NCBI RefSeq assembly: GCF_963921235.1
Contig: NC_086125.1
Coordinates: 21,576,001-21,640,000, forward strand
DNA from: Mobula hypostoma
Lineage: Eukaryota
DNA length: 64,000 bases
Direction of reading: 5' to 3'
Part shown: piece by piece, positions 3,770 to 61,387 of the stretch
Numbering within the stretch: the first letter of the stretch is position 1
How the letters are laid out: each line of letters begins with the position of its first letter
Notes under the pieces: generated by a model
Told to the model about the DNA's origin: nothing
Database searches by the model: none
Seen by the model: only the letters and a program-made list of their open reading frames with translations
Program-made: the position numbers and the translations under genes

Positions 3770-4566
3770 GTTTAAGGTGAAGAAGGTTAGAGGTGATGCA
3801 AGGAAAAGTTTTTCCACTCCTAGTGCACTTGTAATTTGTAACACACTAATTAGAAACAATTCCTCTAACAACATTTAAAAACAATCTTGAATCGCCAAAG
3901 CACAGAAGGTTATAATCAAATGCTGGTAAATGAAATTTATAGAGATGGACACTATGGCTAGGTGAATGGCCTATTTCTCAAAAATCTCTATAGCAAAATA
4001 TTTCCAGTCTTTTAAACTCTCTTCTTCAAAGCACAGTGTTTGAATATTTTTAAAGTAGATAGGTTCTACCATGGGTAAATGGGGATGCAGAATCAATGTT
4101 ACAATCAGATCAACCATATTTTACTAAATGGCAGAGCAGGCTTGTGGATCAGAAGCAGAGCTACGAGGACCTTCAGTGTAAGTGTTGAACAAGCTTCCAG
4201 CAGAAGTGATAGATGTGGGGTCAATTATAGCATTTAGGAATTTTGGATAGTTACATAGGTTATGGGGTGCAAGTAGATGGGGTTAGGCAGAAGACCTGCT
4301 CGGCACGGACTAGTTGGGCCAAGGGGCTCGCTAAAGTGATTCAAATCCAAGTTAGGGTAAAACTCTGATGATCTGCAATCCAACCACTCAGAGAAGCTAA
4401 TGGCTCAGCATCTATCTACGACTAGAAGTTCTATTGGATTCGAATATGCATTCTATCCTAATGTTGCAAAATAGCAGTCACAGATGTGAGATAGTTGTAG
4501 CACAAGAGTTCATTGGAAGGAAATTCTATGAAAGTCAAACTGCATGATGTAACTATCTTTACTTTC

Positions 4567-4833: not shown

Positions 4834-5814
4834 TCCCTGTCACTTACAAAGGCCTGAGACACTGGTAATCTCCATCATTTAATTTATGGCAATTCACACA
4901 TCCAACTGTATGCTATTTTCAGCCTGTTCTTTAATTAAATGTCCATTGTGTTTAAGTAAACATTTTCATCAATATTACTACCTCAAGTCCAGTGATATAT
5001 TAAATATTTGCCAAAAACCAAGGAGTCCGTAGTGAAGCACAGGCTGCTACAGTTCTCAGCTACTGAGATAAAATCAAGGATAGTCCTTTGTCCATTATTG
5101 CTTAAATCAACAGCACACAGCATGTGTCAATGAAGCTACTTAGGATCTCCTGGGAATCCTTCACCTGATAGTCACAACAATCCCCTTGTTATGAGAGTCC
5201 TATTACTCCAAAACTAGAACAGCTGCATCTTGCTTTGATAAGCATATTAATCATGCATCAATTCAGCACAAGGTTTGTTTAATCCAATTGAACAATGATA
5301 ATAAAACTGACTGATACGGAAAATATTTCTCTACAACCAATTGAAAACCATGGATGTTGACCTATCCATAAAACTACCCCCAGAAGAGATGCAATAAGAC
5401 TAAAGCAGCTTGGGGAAAGACATTCAACTTAACTTCTAGAAATGACGACTTGGAGCATATTGGCTGCAAGTAGTGATGGCCTCATGATTCAATGAAGCAA
5501 CAGTAAATGTGACCAGAAACTAATCCCACAAATATTTAAGTACCTACACTCAAAGATAACTTATTTATCCTTAATGTCCATCACCAGAATCTCCATATAG
5601 CATAGAAAAATATGTAAGCAAATAATAAGTCAAAAGAACATTAAGTGTTAACAATGCATCCACATTTGAAACAAAAAATGAAGGATAATGACCCACTGAA
5701 TGTAATCAGACGTCTAATCTATGAAACTCAAAATAGCTAAACTAATATAGAGTAACAATCACCAACTAAATAAATCTTCTAACCAATACAAATTTTTGAA
5801 ACTTTTATAGATAC

Positions 5815-5986
5815 CTTTCCTGCTCGTCACTGTCATGAGAAAGCAAATCTAACCGTTGGTTAATTTTAGCAACAATGGATTCAGAATTTTGACTGGCATT
5901 CCCTCTCTGAGAGTCCCATGATTTGCCACCATAGCCATAGTTTGATCCAGAGCTTTGTCCATAGTCATAGTTATAGTCATCATAGC
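5815..5986 (-). CDS. AKAP8: AKAP8-like exon 3 (GYDDYNYDYG...NSESIVAKINQRLDLLSHDSDEQER, 172 nt); gene continues beyond the window start
   Basis: AKINQRLD motif; acceptor cttcag, donor AG|gtatct; paralogous to 36236-36452. The symbol is assigned by position (downstream of AKAP8L, as in mammals) and is tentative. Confidence 0.88.
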
Positions 5987-6329
5987 CTGAAGAGGAAATA
6001 AGAATGTACTGCAATGATATGTCAAAGTTCTAGGATTAAACAAGCTTGCAAGCCCTTCAAAGTTTGCAACGTAGTGTTAACAACACTTGTGTTCAGATTC
6101 AGATTAATTTATCACATGCACATCAAAGCACACAGTGACATGTGCCATTTGCATTAACAACCAACCAACTAAGATTGTGACGGGGGCAGCCCATAAGTGT
6201 TGTTGTACATTCCAGTGCCAATGTATGTACTGATATATCAGGTCAAGAAATTATCAGCCAGATAATTCAAAGTTGGGAGCTATGAGATAATCATCGGGAA
6301 TTAAAATGCTCGGCCATTAGAAAGTCCTG

Positions 6330-10680: not shown

Positions 10681-11096
10681 TAGAAAAACAATGGAAGTAG
10701 TGAATAGTTGTACTACAAAGGTGCACTCTAAATTACTGATGAAATTGGTTTTACTGGAACTAAAGAAACAATTCCATTTGGAGCTTTATATAGATTTGAA
10801 TATTTCTTTGTGATTATTTATCACTGCTTTGAATTTGCAGTTCTTTGACTGTGCATCATAAATCAAAATTCCTTATAGTTTGTAAATAATGGCTGTAAAG
10901 GGACAGGGAGGTTCTGGAGATGTAACCTGGGAGCCAAAGGGGCAGTAATCCAAAAATTCTGCAATAAGTTCCTTCTCATCACCGAACTACCGATCTGCAG
11001 TAAAAAAACAGAAGCTACCAGAAACACTCGGCAGGTCGGGTAGCATCTTTGGCGAATGGAACAGGACCAACGATTTAGATAGGAAATCTTTGTCTG

Positions 11097-11348
11097 GTTG
11101 GTTAAGCCCATCACCACTACTGGGGCATTGCCAACCAACAGACAGCAGAGTCCTCTGTACTGGACCAGTCTTCCAGGTTGTCCCCAGGTGTAACCCATCT
11201 TCAAAGATCTCTCCTCTCCTAAGTATTAGGTCTTTGGAGCTTCAGTTGGCGTTTCTGTAGCTCTGAATTTTTATGGGATGGGGTTGCTAGCCCCATACCC
11301 AACCCTCCTCCTTTCGCAGACGGGCTTGGGACCGTCCATGGCGGAGTT
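11097..11348 (-). mobile_element. Short internally deleted RTE-clade non-LTR element (twister 5' end plus ORF C-terminal remnant)
   Basis: Twister and RTE-like 5' UTR (ggggctagcaaccccatcccataaaaa) joined to a remnant reading LKMGYTWGQPGRLVQYRGL, similar to the RTE ORF end WGQLERLAQDR; short (aacc) tail. Confidence 0.7.
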
Positions 11349-11349
11349 C
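11298..11349 (-). ncRNA. Twister ribozyme (P1-type) core lacking the native P1 5' strand
   Basis: Minus strand reads g AA CTCC GC CATG GACG GTCCCAAGCC CGTC TGCGAAA GGAG GAGGG TTGGG: P2 CUCC/GGAG, P4 GACG/CGUC, L4 GUCCCAAGCC, L1 GAGGG, matching the twister consensus as recalled. Confidence 0.85.
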
Positions 11350-12200
11350 GAAAATCCTTGGTCAGATCCGAAATGTTGCGGCCGCCGGGCGTGCGGTAAC
11401 TCCTATACCGGGACGTGGGGGTCCCGCGTTTCCTCTGGGAAAGGGGGCGAACCGCAACACGTCGTCCCACTGAAGTGGCGCCATTTTGTGAGGTGGACTG
11501 TGCATGGGGAGGGGGGGACCGCCGGGGAAAACACGACACCCACCGCAGTTGAGCTGCCGGTAGTTCGCCGCCATGTGCCAGGGCCGCGCTCAGCCAGAGA
11601 TGGCTTCGGATGAGGGAAAAAACAACAAATACACCTGAACCACAGCCAAAGGCACCGCGCACTCCAACTGAAAACTGACATGTGGCCTAGCCAATCACAT
11701 GGCAGGAGATCCTCCACTGACATTAGCCACAGCCAATCAGTGGCAGCGTAGGGTCGGTCATATGTGACGTATTATTTCTTGCCTAACCTCCAACAACAGA
11801 GAAAAAACAATTACTGCTTGCGGGGTTTATTTTACCTGGTCTTCATATCAACTACACGGCATATCAAACCTTATGAGGCGCCTGTCAAGACTCGATTCAC
11901 TGACCTGAATAACGACCATCCATTTTGTTTAGGTTCGGAGAGAAGCGCCCGCCGGGCGTCCAGCGGGCTGCCACTCACCCGGATGTACCAGTAGCGGCTG
12001 CCCATTGGTCAGGGCTGAGGCATGTGGGCGGGTCTCAGGACGCAACACCGCCTCTGATCAGCGGCAGGATGAAACGTCAATCATTGTGCCTGCGATTCAT
12101 TATGGGTGGTTCTGTGTAAACTGACTGGCAGCGATAAGCAGCCGACTGATCTATTGGGGGCCATACCGTGACTGCTCCCTCTGTGAAGTTTGCACTACTG
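11350..12200 (-). promoter_or_regulatory. CpG island/promoter of the AKAP8-like gene
   Basis: CpG-rich; CCAAT boxes (~11691, ~11733, reverse ~12004 and ~12153), TGACGT (~11765), GC box (~12026), YY1 motif at 11479-11490. Confidence 0.75.
11544..11574 (-). CDS. AKAP8: AKAP8-like paralog, probable coding exon 1 (MAANYRQLNC+G, 31 nt)
   Basis: cacATGGCGGCG start in a CpG island, donor G|gtgggt, phase 1 compatible with the next exon. No homology support recalled for this peptide. Confidence 0.6.
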
Positions 12201-39731: not shown

Positions 39732-40310
39732 ACTGAAGGAAGAGCTAGTAAGAGATTTGAAAGTGGGAGGGGGGAGGGGAAGATGCAAAATGATAGGAGA
39801 AGACAGGAGGGGGAGGGATGGAGCCAAGAGCTGGACAGGTGATTGGCAAAGGGGATATGAGAGGATCATGGGACAGGAGGCCCAGGGAGAAAGATGGGGG
39901 GGGGGAACCCAAAGGATGGGCAAGGGGTATAGTCAGAGGGAGAAAAAGGAGAGTGAGAGAAAGAACGTGTGTATAAAAATAAATAACGGATGGGGTGAAC
40001 ATTGACTTCTCTAACTTCCGCTAATGCCCCACCTCCCCCTCGTACCCCCTCCGTTATTCATTTTTATACACACATTCTTTCTCTCACTCTCCTTTTTCTC
40101 CCTCTGTCCCTCTGACTATACCCCTTGCCCATCCTCTGGGTTCCCCCCCACCCCTTGTCTTTCTCCCTGGGCCTCCTGTCCCATGATCCTCTCATACCCC
40201 CTTTGCCAATCACCTGTCCAGCTCTTGGCATCCCTCCCCCTCCTGTCTTCTCCTATCATTTTGGATCTCCCCCTCCCACTTTCAAATCTCTTACTAACTC
40301 TTCCTTCAGT

Positions 40311-48392: not shown

Positions 48393-49317
48393 TAGTCATA
48401 GTCATACTTTTATTAATCCTGGGGGAAATTGGTTTTTGTTACAGTTGCTCCATAATTAATAAATAGTAATAGAACCATAAATAGTTAAATAGTAATATGT
48501 AAAATTATGCCAGTAAATTATGAAATAAGTCCAGGATCAGCCTATTGGCTCAGGACGTCTGACCCTCCAAGGGAGGAGTTGTAAAGTTTGATGGCCACAG
48601 GCAGGAATGACTTCCTATGACGCTCTGTGTTGCATCTCGGTGGAATGAGTCTCTGGCTGAATGTACTCCTGTGCCCACCCAGTACATTATGTAGTGGATG
48701 GGAAACATTGTCCAAGATGGCATGCAACTTAGACAGCATCCTCTTTTTAGACACCACCGTCAGAGAGTCCAGTTCCATCCCCACAACATCACTGGCCTTA
48801 TGAATGAGTTTGTTGATTCTGTTGGTGTCTGCCACTCTCAGCCTGCTGCCCCAGCATACAACAGCAAACATGATAGCACTGGCCACCAGACTCGTAGAAC
48901 ATCCTCAGCATAGTCCGGCAGATGTTAAAGGACTTCAGTCTCCTCAGGAAATAGAGACGGCTCTGACCCTTCTTGTAGACAGCCTCAGTGTTCTTTGACC
49001 AGTCCAGTTTATTGTCAATTTGTATCCCCAGGTATTTGTAATCCTCCACCATGTCCACACTGACCCCCTGGATGGAAACAGGGGTCACCAGTACCTTAGC
49101 TCTCCTCAGGTCTACCACCAGCTCCTTAGTCTTTTTCACATTAAGCTGCAGATAATTCTGCTCACACCATGTGACAAAGTTTCCTACTGTAGCCCTGTAC
49201 TCGGCCTCATCTCCCTTGCTGATGCATCCAACTATGGCAGAGTCATCCCAAAACTTCTGAAGATGACAAGACTCTGTGCAGTAGCTGAAGTCCAAGGTGT
49301 AAATGGTGAAGAGAAAG
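48393..49317 (-). mobile_element. Rex1/Babar-type LINE, 5'-truncated young copy, inserted in a CR1 fragment (~48075-48392 plus 49318-50010)
   Basis: KF(W/S)DDSAIVG, LNVKKTKELVVD and YKYLG motifs; (atgact)n tail; one frameshift. Confidence 0.9.
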
Positions 49318-49690
49318 GCAAGGATTTTATTCCCTAGAGCATAGGAGAATGAGGGGAGATTTCATTGAGGTATACAACATTATAAGGGTATACCAAAGAT
49401 GGGGTAAATGTCTACAAGCTTTTTTTTCTCTATCATTTGGGTGAGACTAAAACTAAAGGTCATAGGTTTAAGGCAAAAGGTAAAATATCTAAGGGAATAC
49501 GAGGGGGAACTACTTCACTCCTAAGGTGGAGCAAATGTGGAACGAGTTGCCAGCAGGTGGTGTGGGTTCAATAGTAACATGTAAGTTTGGAGAGGTACAT
49601 GGATGAGAGTGTTATGAAGGGCAATGGTCCACATGCAGATAGAACAGACCACGCAGAAATCCACACTAGCACAAACTAGATGGACTAGAC

Positions 49691-49983
49691 CAGTGGTCCC
49701 CAAACTCTGGGCCATGGACTGATACAATACCGCGAAGCATGCAGCGGTGGCCGGGACGCACTCAGCACATCTTTAAGAAAAAAGCCGAAATAAACAAGCT
49801 AATTAATTAGGTGTCGCCCAGCACGTAAATGTCAGCCTAGATCAGAGGCGGCACCTAATTAATTAGCTTGTTTATTTCGGCTTCTTTTCTTAAAGATGTG
49901 CTGGGTGCAGCCTGGCTACCACTGCACCATTGCATTCTTCGCGGCAATGTATCGGTCCGCGGCCCAGAGGTTGGGGACCACTG
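49691..49983. mobile_element. hAT MITE with a palindromic interior
   Basis: TIRs CAGTGGTCCCCAA / TTGGGGACCACTG; degenerate 8-bp TSD GACTAGAC / GACCAGAG. Confidence 0.8.
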
Positions 49984-55002: not shown

Positions 55003-58000
55003 CAGAATCAGGTTTAATATCATTGGCATTTGTCATGAAATTTGATAACCTTGTAGCAGCAGTACAATGCAATACATGATAATAGAAAAAAACTGAATTA
55101 GAGTAAATATATAATAGCTAAATAAGTAGTGCAAAAATAGGAAATAGAAAAAGTGAGGTAGAGTTCATGCATTCAATGCCCATTTAGAAATCAGATGGCA
55201 GAGGGGAAGAAACTTTTCCTGAATCGCTGAGAATCAGAATCAGGTTTATTATCACCGGCATGTGTTGTGAAATTTGATAACTTAGCAGCAGCAATTCAAT
55301 GCAATACATAATGTAGAAGAAACAAGTAGTAATAAGTAAATCAATTACGATATACGTATATTGAATTGATTAAAAATCGTGCAAAAAACAAATAATATAT
55401 ATTTAAAAAGTGAGGTAGTGTTCACAGGATCAATGTCCATTTAAGAATCAGATGGCAGAAGGGAAGAAGCTGTTCTTGAATCGCTAAGTGCATGCCTTCA
55501 GGCTTCTGTACCTCCTTCCTGATGGTAACAGTGAGAAATCCTGGGCGCTGGAGGTCCTTAATAATGGACGCTGCCTTTCTGAGATACCCCTCCATAAAGA
55601 TGTCCTGGGTACTTTGTAGGCTAGTACCCAAAATGGAGCTGACTAAATTTACAACCCTCTGCAGCTTCTTTCGGTCCTGTGCAGTAGCCCCCTCCCCATA
55701 CCAGACAGTGATGCAGCCTGGCAGAATGCTCTCCATGGTACATCTATAGAAGTTTTTGAGTGTATTTGTTGACATACCAAATCTCTCCAAAGTCCTAATG
55801 AAGTATAGTCGCTGTCTTGCCTTCTTTACAACTGCATTGATATGTTGGGGCCAGGTTAGATCCTCAGAGATCTTGACACCCAGGAACTTGAAGCTGCTCA
55901 CTCTCTCCACTTTTGATCCCTTTATGAGGATTAGTATGTGCTCCTTTGTCTTACCCTTCCTAAAGTCCACAATCAGCACTTTCATCTTACTGATGTTGAG
56001 TGCCAGGTTGTTGCTGCGACACTAGTTGGCATATCTTGCTCCTGTACACCCTCTTGTCACCACCTGAGATTCTACCTGCAATGGTTGTATCATCAGCAAA
56101 TTTATAGATGGTATTTGAGCTATGCCTAGCCACACAGTCATGGGTATAGAGAGAGTAGAACAGTGGGCTAAGCACACACCTCTGAGGTGCACCAGTATCG
56201 ATCGTCAGCGAGGAGGAGATGTTATCACCAATCCGCACAGATTGTGGTTTTCCTGTTAGGAAGTCGGGGATCGAATTGCAGAGGGAGGTACAGAGGCCCA
56301 CGTTCTGTAACTTCTCAATCAGGATTGTGAGAATGATGGTATTAAATGCTGAGCTATAGTCGATGAACAGCATCCTGACATAGGTGTTTGTATTGTCCAG
56401 CTGGTATAAGGCTGTGTGAAGAGCCATTGAGATTGCATTTGTTGTTGACCTATTGTGGTGAAAGGCAAATTGCAATGGGTTCAGGTCCTTGCTGAGGCAG
56501 GAGTTTAGTCTGGTCATGACCAACCTCTCAAAGCATTTCATCACTGTAGAAATGAGTGCCACCAGGCAATAGTCATTAAGGCCGCCCACATTATTCTTCT
56601 TAGGCGCTGGTATAATTGTTGCCTTTTTGAAGCAAGTGGGAACTTCCACCCATAACAGTGAGAGGTTGAAAATGTCCTTGAATACTCCTGCCAGTTGGTT
56701 GGCACAGGTATTCAGAGCCTTACCAGGTACTCCATCAGAACCTTCCACCTTCAGAATTCTGTACCCCTTTCCTAATGGCAGCAATGAGAAGAGGGCATGT
56801 CCTGGGAGGTAGGGGTCCCACCACCTTGCTGAGGCACTGACCTGGAAACTATGGAGACTAGAACCCATGATGGAGCTGACTAGTTTGACAACTCTGCAGC
56901 TTACTTTGATCCTCCATTGCGCACCCCCCCCCCCGTACCAGAGGGTAACACAGCCAGTTAGAATGCTCAACGAGGTACATCTGTAGAAATTTGTGAGAGT
57001 TTTTGGTAACATACCAAATTTCCTCAAACTCTTAATGAAATACGGCTGCTATCTTGCCTTCTTTATAGCTGCATCAATATGTTGTGTCCAGATTAGGTCC
57101 TCAGAGATATCGACACCCAGGAACTTGAAATTTCTCACTCCTCTATAAGGACTGATGTGTGTTCCTTTTCCCTCGTCTTACCCTTTCTGAAGTCCAAAAT
57201 CAGTTCTTTGGTGTTACTGACATCGAGTGCAAGGTTGTTGTCTATTCAACTAGATGGTATATCTCACTCCTGTACTCCCTCTCCTCAACATCTGAGATTC
57301 TGCCGACAATGGTTGTATTGTCAGCAAATTTATAGATAGCGTTTGAGCTGTAACTAGCAACACAGTCATGGGTGGAGAGAGAGTAGAGCTAAACACGCAT
57401 TCCTGAGGTGTGCCAGTATTGATTGTCAGTGAGGTGGAGAAGTTACTTCCAATCTCCATCGATCGTGGCCTTCCAGTTAGGAAGTTGAGGGTCCAGTTGC
57501 AGAGGGAAGTACAGAGGCCCGGTTTCTGGAGCCTCTTGATCAGAATGATGGTGCTAAACGCTGATTGTAGTCAATAAACATAATCCTGACATAGGTATTT
57601 GTGTTGTACAGGTGATCCAAGACCACATGGAGAGCCAATTGGATCACTGTAGACCTACTGAGATGGTGTCCGGCATAGAGCTATTGTGGTGATAGGCAAA
57701 TTTCAGTGAGTCTAGGTCCTTGCTGAGGCAGGAGTTGATTCTAGCCATAACCAACCTCTCAAAGCACTTCATCACCATACATGAGAGTGCTACTGGACAA
57801 TAGTAGTGAAGGCAGCTCATCCTGCTCTTCTTGCACACTGGTATAATCATTGCTCTTTTGAAGCAGGTGGGAACTTCCAACTGTAGTAATGAGAGATCGA
57901 AAATGTCTTTGAACACCCTGCCAGTTGGTTGGTACAGGTTTTCAGAGCCTTAACAGGTATTCCATCGGGGCCTGTTGCCTTGGAAGGTTCAAAGGTTCAG

Positions 58001-58400
58001 AAGTTCAATTTAATGTCAGAGAAATGTATACAATATACATCCTGAAATGCTTTAACTCAACTGTTGTAACTCAGTGAAATCCCACTGGAATTAGGGTGGT
58101 GAAACACACCAGCAATTGTTCAAAGGTTCATCATCTTGAAAGACAGCCTGACATCGGCCTCCGAAACAGAGATTACAGGGTCACTGGGTACTGCAGTGAT
58201 CCTCATGGCAGTAGTTTTATTCTCCTTTTCAAAGTGAGCATAACAGATACTGAGCTTGTCTGGGAGTGAACCTTCATTGCCATTCACCATGTTGGGTTTC
58301 ACTTGGTAGGAATCAATGGCTTGTAAATCCTGCCAGAGTTGACATGCTTCCAATGTCACCTCCAACCTGGCTTGGTGTTGTTCCTTTCCTCTTGAAAAAT
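55003..58400 (-). mobile_element. Nested cluster of Rex1/Babar LINE copies
   Basis: RT motifs [23 protein letters not shown] and FKFLGV (ORFs 55422-55985, 55987-57027, 57644-57916); two (gaatca)n tails at ~55003 and ~55231. Confidence 0.88.
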
Positions 58401-59609
58401 AGCCCTCCACAAGTCGTACCTGGTTTTCTTATACAGACCTGGGTTGCCAGACTCGAATGCCACAGCTCATCAACCAAGAATGTAAAATCTGTACCAAATT
58501 CATGCTCAGGTATATCAACTTTGACTGGTGCACACCAGTTTTTTTTAAATAAACCACCTGTTATTTTGAACATCAACTCCATGTGCCCCTTTCAGTTTGC
58601 TACTAAAGTGTGCAATAAAGAATTAAAGTAACAGGCCACCAGGTATCCCAGACTTACACTTGCAGTCTAAATAAAGATGTTCCTTCACCCTGGGTTTGGG
58701 TCTTTCTATTGGGGAGGAAACTGCATCCTTTTATTAATATTATTTAGAGAGACAGCACAATACTCAGCCCTCCCAGTTGTTAGCCGTAAATAGAGTAAAC
58801 CAATTTTCAAATATGCAAACTAACTTTTTTTTAACTTGGAAGGAAAGTTTCTTAAATGTCCTTAATGTATCTGCCTCTACCACTGCCCCTGGCAGACCCC
58901 ACCAGTCTCTGTGTAAAACACTTACCTCTGGCATTCTCACAATACTTTCCTTCAATCACTTTATAATTATGGACAAAAATGAGTCCAAGCAAAGACCCAA
59001 AGTACCAGCTATACTCTTCTCTCTGCAGATGCTGTCTGACCCGCTGAGCTCCTCCAGTATTCAGTGTGGATTTACAAATCAAGATGGCATGGAACTTAGA
59101 GGGGAACCTGCAGATGGTGCTCCCCATCCATCTACCACCCTTGCTGGCAGGAGTCATGGATTTGGGAGGTGCTGTTAGGACAGCCTGGTAAGTGACTACA
59201 GTGTATTTTGCAGATGGTACAGCGGGCAGGAGTACATGATAAAGTAAAGGCTTAGCATGGTGGATGGAGTGTCCAATCAAGCAAATATGGGGAAGGGGCT
59301 GAGAGCAGACATGCCATAAATGGTGGAGGGGTGCAATCAGAAAATACTAGAGACACTCAGCAAAAGTACTGAAGACAGAGAAAGAAATATGTTTTATGTT
59401 GGAAGGTTAATCATGTGGCACGGTGGTCAGTATAGAGGTAATTAGGAGAAAAACACGGGGAACCAGGAAGTGAAGGGAAAAGAAACATCAATACAATACT
59501 TAGAGGAGGCCACCTGACTTGTAGGAAGTGATCAGAGTCACCATATGAAGGTGAGGGAGTGGTGGTAACTGACAGGAAAGGTAACAGAATGCTCCTGTTC
59601 AGGACAAAC

Positions 59610-60310
59610 GTAGAAACATAGAAAACCTACAGCGCAATACAGGCCCTCGGCCCACAAATTTGTGTGAACATGTCCCGACCTTAGAAATTTCTAGGCTTAC
59701 CCATAGCCCTCTATTTTTCTAAGCTCCATGTACCTATCCAAAAGTCTCTTAAAAGACCCTATTGTTTTCACCTCCACCACCATTGCCGCCTCCACACACT
59801 CACCATTCTCTGCTTAAAAACTTACCCCTGACATCACCTCTGTACCTACTCCCCAGCACCTTAAACCTGTGTCTTCTTGTGGCAACCATTTCAGCCCTGG
59901 GAAAAAGCCTCTGACTATCCACATGATCAATGCCTCTCATCATCTTATACACCTCTATCAGGTCACCCCTCATCCTCCGTTGCTCCAAGGAGAAAAGGCT
60001 TAGTTCACTCAACCTGTTTTCATAAGGCATGCTCCCCAATCCAGGCAACATCCTTGTAAACCTCCTCTGCACCCTTTCTATGGCTTCCACATCCTTCCTG
60101 TAGTGAGGCGACCAGAACTGAGCACAGTACTCCAAGTGGGGTCTGACGAGGGTCCTATATAGCTGTAACATTACCTCTCGGTTCCTAAATTCAATTCCAT
60201 GATTGATGAAGGTCAATACACTGTATGCTCTCTTAACCACAGAGTCAACCTGCGCAGCTGCTTTGAGTGTCCTATTGACTCGGACCCCAAGATCCCTCTG
60301 ACCCTCCAGA
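59610..60310 (-). mobile_element. CR1-clade LINE 3' end
   Basis: LYRTLVRPHLEYCAQFWSP...RGDLIEVYK; (tttctatg) tail. Confidence 0.9.
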
Positions 60311-60539
60311 AGCAGGGAAGGGCAATAAATGATGATAAGAGGCGCAGATCGACTGGACAGCCAAAGACTTTGCCCCAGGATGGAAATGGCTGATATAAGG
60401 GCTGTATTTTTAAGGTAGTATACACAAAATGCTGGAGGAACTCAGCAGGCCAGGCAGCATCTATGGAAAAGAGCAAACAGTTCACATTTCAGGCTGAGAC
60501 TCTTCATCAGGACTGGAAAGGAAGGTCTTAGGAGGAAAG

Positions 60540-61387
60540 AATAGGAGGGATAGCAAAGGCTCTGACAGGAAAACCCCAAAGCATTCCACAAGTATATGAA
60601 GGGCAAGGGGATAAGACGTGAGAGAATAGGACCAATCAAGTGTGACAGCAGAAAAGTGTGTATGGAACCAGGGGAGATAGCAGAGATACTTAATGAATAC
60701 TTTGCTTCAGTATTCACTACGGAAAAGGATCTTGGCGATTGTAGGGATGACTTACAGCAGATTGAAAAGATTGAGCATGTAGACGTTAAGACAGAGGATG
60801 TGCTGAAGGTTTTGGAAAGCATCAAGTTGGATAAGTCTCTGGGACCGGACGAGATGTACCCCAGGCTACTGTGGGAGGCGAGGGAGGAAATTGCTGAGCC
60901 TCTGGTAATGATCTCTGCATCATCAATGGGGATGGGAGAGGTTCCAGAGGATTGGAAGGTTGCAGATGTTGTTCCCTTATTCAAGAAAGGGAGTAGAGAT
61001 AGCCCAGGACATTATAGACCAGTGAGTCTTACTTCAGTAGCTGGTAAGTTGATGGAAAAAATCCTGAGAGGCAGGATTTATGAGCATTTGGAGAGGCATA
61101 ATATGATTATGAATATTCAGCATGGTTTTGTCAAAGGCAGGTCGTGCCTTACAAGCCTGATTTAATTTTTTGAGCATGTGACTAAACACATTGATGAAGG
61201 TAGAGCAGTGATGTAGTATATATGGATTTCAGCAAGGCATTTGATAAGGTACCCCATGCAAGGCTTATTGAGAAAGTGAGGAGGCATGGGATCCAAGGGG
61301 ACCTTGCTTTGTGGATCCAGAATTGGTTAGCTCACAGAAGGCAAAGAGTGGTTGTAGATGGGTCATATTCTGCATGGAGGTTGGTGA
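60540..61387 (+). mobile_element. CR1-clade LINE RT fragment
   Basis: VPEDWKVADVVPLFKKG, YRPVSLTS, QHGFVKGRSCLT and DFSKAFDKVPH motifs, with a stop and a frameshift. Confidence 0.9.

Follow-up and report, generated by a model that had tools for sequence, protein, structure and literature searches.

SIDEs derive from R2 by internal deletion; they are short and non-autonomous and retain a 5' HDV-like ribozyme. Eickbush and Eickbush are said to have described them as a head (the ribozyme) and a tail (the region recognized by the reverse transcriptase) that are mobilized in trans and processed from co-transcripts. The closest described twister ribozymes are the T-variants at the 5' ends of Perere-3 elements (RTE clade) of Schistosoma mansoni, where the target-site duplication abuts the AA and (GTAA)n ends the element; for these T-variants, G/AA substrates were cleaved in vitro (PMC8501958). 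The model proposed for Perere-3 entails co-transcription with upstream sequence, twister cleavage that leaves a 5'-AA end, and target-primed reverse transcription, such that the flank of the new copy abuts the AA (PMC8501958). De la Pena et al. (2020), in a brief remark on work "in preparation", mention "truncated but catalytically competent" twisters at the 5' ends of the RTE superfamily (PMC7761336). Minimal type-P1 twisters that lack P3 (e.g., rice Osa-1-4) and a P1-less "mini-twister" have also been described (review PMC5408937; CHiTA survey PMC11662667). P3 is an optional part in the definition of the twister family, and P1 is dispensable for cleavage, which proceeds at a rate near that of the wild type (PMC5408937); imperfections in P1 were without effect across thousands of natural twisters, and twisters are known from fishes and other vertebrates (PMC11662667).

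We analyzed an element on the minus strand of a 64-kb stretch of DNA, referred to in its entirety as the window. The element is very probably an old copy of a high-copy non-autonomous retroposon, internally deleted from a Perere-3-related RTE element and made from self-cleaved RNA. The coordinates of its features, and of the adjacent exon, are as follows.

Table 1. Features of the twister-headed element and of the neighboring gene, in window coordinates.
Feature	Position	Strand	Evidence
P3-less twister ribozyme core	11299..11348	-	Sequence; RF03160 match; column-for-column alignment with twisters of complete elements
Core parts, 5' to 3': AA, P2, T2 partner, linker CAUGG, P4/L4, L2, P2', L1 GAGGG, UUGG			
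N-1 nucleotide G, first base of the insertion-site flank, where family similarity ends	11349..11349	-	Loose ends of contigs
Whole internally deleted RTE copy, ~253 bp, ending in (AACC)2	11096..11348	-	Multi-copy depth; head and tail homology
Remnant of the RTE ORF C-terminus, KMGYTWGQPGRLVQYRGLCCLLVG	11130..11201	-	tblastn with three ~1030-aa ORFs
Remnant of the RTE stop codon and 3' end	11102..11140	-	29/39 identical to the end of the L007 ORF
Conserved hairpin directly 3' of the core	11275..11300	-	Fold energy; 19-head alignment
Inferred exon 1 (coding part) of the downstream paralogue	11544..11574	-	ATG at 11574-11572; CpG island; frame joins exon 2

Read 5' to 3', the minus strand runs from G11349 through A11348 and A11347, CUCC (11346-11343), GC (11342-11341), CAUGG and ACG (11335-11333), continues with GUCCCAAGCC (11332-11323), CGU (11322-11320) and CUGCGAAA, and closes with GGAG (11311-11308), GAGGG (11307-11303), UUGG (11302-11299) and G11298. 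P2 consists of four Watson-Crick pairs between CUCC and GGAG. P4 has three pairs (A11335-U11320, C-G and G-C) and a G11332-C11323 extension, a G-C pair of the type described in the review of the family (PMC5408937). Both pseudoknots are complementary, T1 between CCC (11330-11328) of L4 and GGG (11305-11303) of L1, and T2 between GC (11342-11341) of L2 and GC (11325-11324) of L4. At least 10 strongly conserved L1/L4 nucleotides, as set out in PMC5408937, are present together with the A on the 3' side of the scissile bond, which is predicted to lie between G11349 and A11348. By analogy with the rice structure, G11307, which opens GAGGG, would be the catalytic guanine. In L2, CUGCGAAA takes the place of the consensus gUAAA. 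A sequence-only reading that preceded this analysis had reported this minus-strand string with P2, P4 and both pseudoknots, and it agrees exactly with the sequence. It had also claimed that no upstream strand complements UUGGG, and indeed a canonical P1 does not form: the upstream flank, uuuucg, cannot pair with UUGG at 11302-11299. An alternative canonical P1 through CCAA at 11361-11358 would need a 9-nt bulge and was rejected as unlikely. In the minimum-free-energy fold of the minus strand, GGAUUUU of the flank (11351-11357) pairs with AAAAUUC (11265-11271) and encloses the twister and the hairpin that follows it; this pairing is specific to this insertion site and is probably due to chance.

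At the gathering thresholds, Rfam cmscan returned no match in the 64-kb window. In E-value mode, the sole ribozyme match in the window was to RF03160 (twister-P1), on the minus strand at 11299-11353, with E of 2e-7 on 251 nt and 5.2e-5 on the whole 64 kb. The match scores 39 bits, short of the gathering score of 67.2, such that the covariance-model check proposed in the earlier reading finds twister-P1, yet below the Rfam threshold. Mismatches in P1 and the lack of a P3 hairpin account for the low score, whereas every upper-case position of the RF03160 consensus (AAC..CCGC, CGGUCCCAAGCCCG and AAAGG.GGAGGG) is matched. A score of 39 bits would not by itself be significant over a whole vertebrate genome, as E would be ~1 or more over multiple gigabases, and the verdict on identity therefore rests on the family boundary and on homology to complete elements, presented below. 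Neither motif search nor blastn revealed a second copy of the twister in the window. Other sub-threshold matches of the same scan fall at 39855-40196 on both strands (snR86, MIR2118, MIR6462, MIR408 and snoR125), a pattern typical of a long inverted repeat. Likewise, matches at 49754-49912 to the plant miRNA models MIR847 (plus strand) and MIR2871 (minus strand) suggest a long hairpin or inverted repeat, not a real miRNA.

The family boundary was sought in Logan contigs of DNA runs, aligned to 10900-11700 at a likeness of at least 80%. Some 4200-4500 contigs per run pile up on ~11089-11358, with the flanks on both sides at single-copy depth; the stretch 11280-11370 has 1072-2066 contigs per run in the organisms that we label A, E, D and G. 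Similarity to the window ends at 11348 in 265, 329, 187 and 294 contigs of four organisms, and at 11349 in a further 85, 89, 52 and 70 contigs, or 19-24% of the total. The latter share is close to the one quarter that arises when a flank base matches G by chance. Beyond 11349, agreement with the flank consensus of the contigs drops to just 0.35-0.36 and the sequence is AT-rich, which indicates that the flanks are unrelated insertion sites. The family therefore begins immediately past the predicted cleavage site, with A11348, and this boundary is found in organisms A, B, D, E and G. Organisms E, D and G each have single-copy contigs that run from the twister into its unique flank, with 1, 3 and 1 differences, respectively, over 81-86 nt; organism B has such contigs as well. 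The insertion is therefore orthologous and older than the split of the five sampled organisms. In the contig summary tables of the family, variants that reach 8% within the twister are limited to CpG transitions at 11316/11315 and at 11322/11321 (21-58% of the depth for each), a minor variant at 11325, and a G that makes up 88-93% of the depth at the position of U11320 in the window copy. In contigs guessed to be RNA, family copies are embedded within longer transcripts, which is uninformative with respect to cleavage.

Relatives of the element were retrieved from metagenome contigs by an exact pattern of conserved blocks with variable gaps (29 loci, 18 of them distinct). Two of these, L007 (1-3257 of its contig) and L009 (24-3285), are complete elements of ~3.2 kb, each with a 50-nt P3-less twister, the hairpin and a single ORF of ~1030 amino acids with Exo_endo_phos, RVT_1 and DUF6451 domains. 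The contig of L007 begins exactly with AA, and (GTAA)n directly follows the stop codon at its end. L002, L013 and L025 are further complete or near-complete twister-headed RTE-like elements. The metagenome elements are assigned to the RTE clade by their architecture and domains, and by a twister and a tail that resemble those of Perere-3. The window element is composed of the two extremities of such an element, a head of ~105 nt and a tail of ~140 nt, with the endonuclease/RT body deleted. Nucleotides 1-81 of the head are 95% identical to L009, and nucleotides 1 to ~104 align with L007, L009 and L029. In the tail, the translation of 11201-11130 best matches the extreme C-terminus of the L007, L002 and L013 ORFs (e.g., RIGYTWNQLEKRAEDRGAWRTLVG; tblastn E of 0.001-0.03), and the similarity of 11140-11102 to the end of the L007 ORF (shuffle p 0.002) falls just before (GTAA)n. 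Each has a short tandem repeat at the 3' end, (AACC)2 at ~11096 in the window copy and (GTAA)n in L007. A single ORF with AP-endonuclease and RT, as expected of an autonomous partner, is present in L007 and L009 from the metagenomes and not in the window copy. No target-site duplication is discernible around this old copy, the best alignment of its flanks being no better than that of shuffles (p 0.25). A HMMER search with the 48-aa remnant ORF against 1.84 billion representatives yielded only four spurious tandem-repeat ORFs and is uninformative for the clade. The window also has long RT-like ORF fragments of other LINE-type elements on the minus strand, at 55400-61000 and 48500-49400; by blastn these are unrelated to the twister-headed element.

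We consider that the 5' boundary of the family, together with the occurrence of the same head on RTE elements, settles the assignment to the Rfam twisters (CL00120; RF03160, type P1). The proposals of the sequence-only reading hold up well against these results. A twister was claimed, and the RF03160 match, the boundary at 11348 and the head on complete endonuclease/RT elements bear this out. Similarity was said to stop at 11348, and that of more than 1000 family contigs per run ends there in four organisms. A link to RTE elements was drawn, and it is corroborated by the head (95% identity over 81 nt to a complete endonuclease/RT element) and by a tail that corresponds to an ORF C-terminus and 3' end. 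Reverse transcription from a self-cleaved RNA was suggested, and the family 5' ends at the predicted cleavage site, along with the RTE head and tail, agree with it.

The Perere-3 model fits every structural observation on the window element. Following this model, source elements would be transcribed by read-in from upstream host sequence, the twister would cut between N-1 and the first A to give a 5'-OH AA end, and target-primed reverse transcription would copy the cleaved RNA. Each daughter copy would start at AA beside an unrelated flank because it is the cleaved RNA that is reverse-transcribed. Internal deletion of a Perere-3-related RTE element would have given rise to the high-copy non-autonomous retroposon, presumably mobilized in trans by a full-length partner in the same genome, and one copy would have inserted in sense within the gene described below, 195 nt past the start of its inferred intron 1, before the five sampled organisms diverged. 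The present results show the motif, the family boundary, the homology to complete elements and the orthology of the insertion; catalysis by the P3-less form, mobilization in trans, the order of these events and any cleavage of the AKAP8-like pre-mRNA are inferences that go beyond them.

The metagenome relatives place the peculiarities of the window twister in context. The core aligns column for column with twisters on complete RTE-like elements. Among the twisters of the metagenome loci, those with P3 reach 60.7-68.1 bits, two of them clearing the gathering score; for P3-less twisters at the head of complete ORFs the range is 40.2-41.6 bits, similar to the 39 bits of the window copy. The shortfall from 67.2 bits therefore tracks the absence of P3, and the Rfam threshold misses the whole P3-less class. 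Across 19 aligned heads, P2 and P4 are paired in every case, and T1 and T2 are invariant, hence without covariation. The outer pair of P4 is C-G in 17 of the 19 heads and A-U in the remaining two, the window copy and L009; the change is compensatory, which makes U11320 the better-pairing state. No canonical upstream P1 strand is present in the flanks of the 18 related metagenome heads. Considering that complete relatives also lack an upstream P1 and have the conserved downstream hairpin, the missing P1 is the normal state of the lineage, not damage peculiar to the window copy.

The hairpin (11300-11275) has the 5' strand GGG-U-AUGGGG, the loop CUAGCAA and the 3' strand CCCCAU-CCC, and it employs the GG(G) of the nominal 3' strand of P1. 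Its fold energy is -15.8 kcal/mol (z -2.5). Across the 19 heads it is 88.9% paired, with three pairs changed on both sides (GC to AU), and its covariation score lies above all 500 shuffles and all slid controls, a significance that shuffles overstate as the sequences are related. Together with the GUAAAA that follows, the 3' strand has a second, coding role: read in the ORF frame, it gives a conserved PHP(V/I)K..ATETxT peptide, and conservation of the hairpin may hence be partly due to coding. In L007, L009, L002, L013 and L025 the ORF frame is open from inside or just past the hairpin, with a conserved N-terminal PHPVK..ATETxTR, such that hairpin and coding constraints overlap. The downstream hairpin may act as a surrogate of P1 that makes the ribozyme independent of its flank, which may explain how it functions beside any flank. 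A broader proposal, that RTE-borne twisters, those of this vertebrate family among them, represent a distinct flank-independent topology in which upstream P1 never forms and UUGG-G is closed by the downstream hairpin, strikes us as somewhat unlikely. Were it true, cleavage would require no sequence 5' of the scissile bond, much as in HDV-like ribozymes, and the sequence-intact sense-strand copies among thousands in vertebrate introns, including this one, would be autonomous co-transcriptional cutters of pre-mRNA.

The minus strand of the window has a tandem pair of AKAP95-family genes, at 36474-23394 (upstream) and 11574-5808 (downstream), the latter with paralogous N-terminal exons. The upstream gene, from 36474 to 23394, matches PF04988 at 55.5 bits. 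The pair fits what we take to be the arrangement on human chromosome 19, AKAP8L followed by AKAP8. A CpG island marks the start of the downstream gene, and two inverted CCAAT boxes lie upstream. Its inferred exon 1 has 31 coding nucleotides from the start of the ATG and a donor G/GUGGGU at 11544/11543, and its frame joins exon 2 (7907-7869, GSYGNWDAESSGA); exon 3 (5808-6029) has 49% identity with the upstream paralogue (E 6e-16). In this sequence-derived gene model, intron 1 of an AKAP8-like gene would hold the twister in the sense orientation, 195 nt past the donor and where the CpG island ends. The earlier reading had proposed this context, and the in-frame donor and the tandem AKAP95-family paralogue bear it out. 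Slow ribozymes within introns need not disturb splicing, whereas fast ones can abort processing; consequently, any effect on the host transcript would depend on the rate of cleavage. One run of organism B is small, at 159 million letters, and is guessed to be RNA; in it, a 498-nt contig has a depth of 7.45 over 10900-11312 (the element body and the downstream intron), and the depth is zero over 11359-11700 (the flank, the intron up to nucleotide 195 and exon 1). Genomic DNA would not reach a depth of 7.45 in a run of this size. The coverage could represent a stable RNA that starts at or near the twister, or a hole of assembly or filtering.

The core is without private substitutions, every one of its bases occurring also in the heads of complete elements, and for this reason we think it probable that the core is able to self-cleave in vitro; that it measurably cuts the host pre-mRNA is, in our estimate, doubtful. 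The main alternative accepts descent from an RTE twister and holds that this copy, or the whole P3-less and P1-less subfamily, no longer cleaves and persists as inert intronic DNA. We regard this as a serious possibility, though short of probable. The absence of an upstream P1, the score under the gathering threshold and the age of the copy (a CpG o/e of 0.08 and ~16 majority differences from the family in the body) are all in keeping with a relic, and the persistence of the insertion in five organisms within a housekeeping-type gene is easiest to understand if it is harmless. Yet the core has the bases of the complete-element heads and keeps all four of its CpGs, the literature portrays P1 as dispensable and P3 as optional, and cleavage within an intron need not do harm.

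At the other extreme, the twister could have been exapted by the host, under selection either to set free a stable RNA from the intron or to process or limit the AKAP8-like pre-mRNA. The sense orientation 195 nt from the donor would suit such a role, as would the organism B run that covers 10900-11312 (depth 7.45) and not 11359-11700, although holes in contigs are not proof. The core is intact and retains four of four CpGs (o/e 0.79) where the remainder of the element has decayed to a single one (o/e 0.08). However, the CpG island (o/e 0.84-1.06) stops right at the twister, and the simplest reading of CpG retention is protection by the unmethylated island, not selection. With U at 11320, this copy regains a P4 pair missing from most of the family, but the A-U pair is also found in L009 and may be ancestral. 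Majority differences from the family number 1 in 50 positions for the twister and ~16 in 200 for the body, a contrast that is not significant and is confounded by alignment clipping. In the other organisms the flanks are as conserved as the twister, orthologue divergence in the contig tables being no lower in the twister than around it (11 substitutions in 350 nt), which argues against excess constraint, and thousands of other copies exist. Exaptation is very improbable. Finally, the notion that a GC-rich stretch by a CpG island happens to fit the twister model, which could appeal to the sub-threshold score and to an E of ~1 or more over a multi-gigabase genome, is refuted in practice: in four organisms, a family of more than 1000 contigs has its 5' end precisely at the base where cleavage is predicted; the first 81 nt of the head share 95% identity with a complete RT element; the core aligns with the twisters of such elements; and relatives pass the Rfam threshold.

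Experiments have established a twister-RTE partnership only for Perere-3 of a flatworm; the reading that we prefer, an old, internally deleted copy of a twister-headed RTE retroposon, carries it over to a vertebrate lineage, as a non-autonomous family of high copy number built from head and tail. The coincidence of repeat 5' ends with the scissile bond in several species constitutes a clean computational signature of ribozyme processing in vivo, and the host gene offers a natural test case, with a possibly active self-cleaving RNA 195 nt into its first intron. The novelty is modest, as the mechanism has been published for Perere-3 (PMC8501958) and asserted for the RTE superfamily (PMC7761336). 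A literature search that paired "twister ribozyme" with "shark" found nothing, the supplementary lists of the large surveys lying outside the search.

Compared to the S. mansoni Perere-3 twisters, the window copy has the same AA start at the cleavage site next to an unrelated flank, an identical P2 (CUCC/GGAG), T2 GC, L4 GUCCCAAGC, L1 GAGGG and UUGG, and an upstream P1 that is mismatched or absent, and the related complete element L007 likewise ends in (GTAA)n. P2, GAGGG and UUGG equal the S. mansoni versions and not the Rfam consensus, a departure that speaks for a common ancestry of the twisters borne by RTE elements. In contrast to the Perere-3 twisters, the window copy is without the P3 hairpin (the linker being CAUGG) and has a 3-nt insertion in L2; its host is a vertebrate, and it is an internally deleted derivative of ~250 bp without endonuclease/RT and with no detectable target-site duplication. 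The Perere-3 paper (PMC8501958) makes no mention of a conserved 3' hairpin that involves the UUGG strand. The family resembles the remark on the RTE superfamily in that a twister without part of the canonical fold is conserved at RTE 5' ends, a likeness by description only, as the searchable text names no sequences, hosts or data (PMC7761336). With Osa-1-4 and the mini-twister it shares the P2/P4/T1/T2 architecture without P3; those are stand-alone motifs or engineered constructs, whereas here the motif forms the 5' extremity of a retroposon, with the 3' strand of P1 taken up in a hairpin downstream. As in SIDEs, the ribozyme head and the tail are kept and the coding body is deleted, but the ribozyme is a twister instead of HDV-like, the clade is RTE instead of R2, and the window family is not site-specific. 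The window copy is one of thousands in a known ribozyme-retrotransposon partnership, and not a device specific to the AKAP8-like gene.
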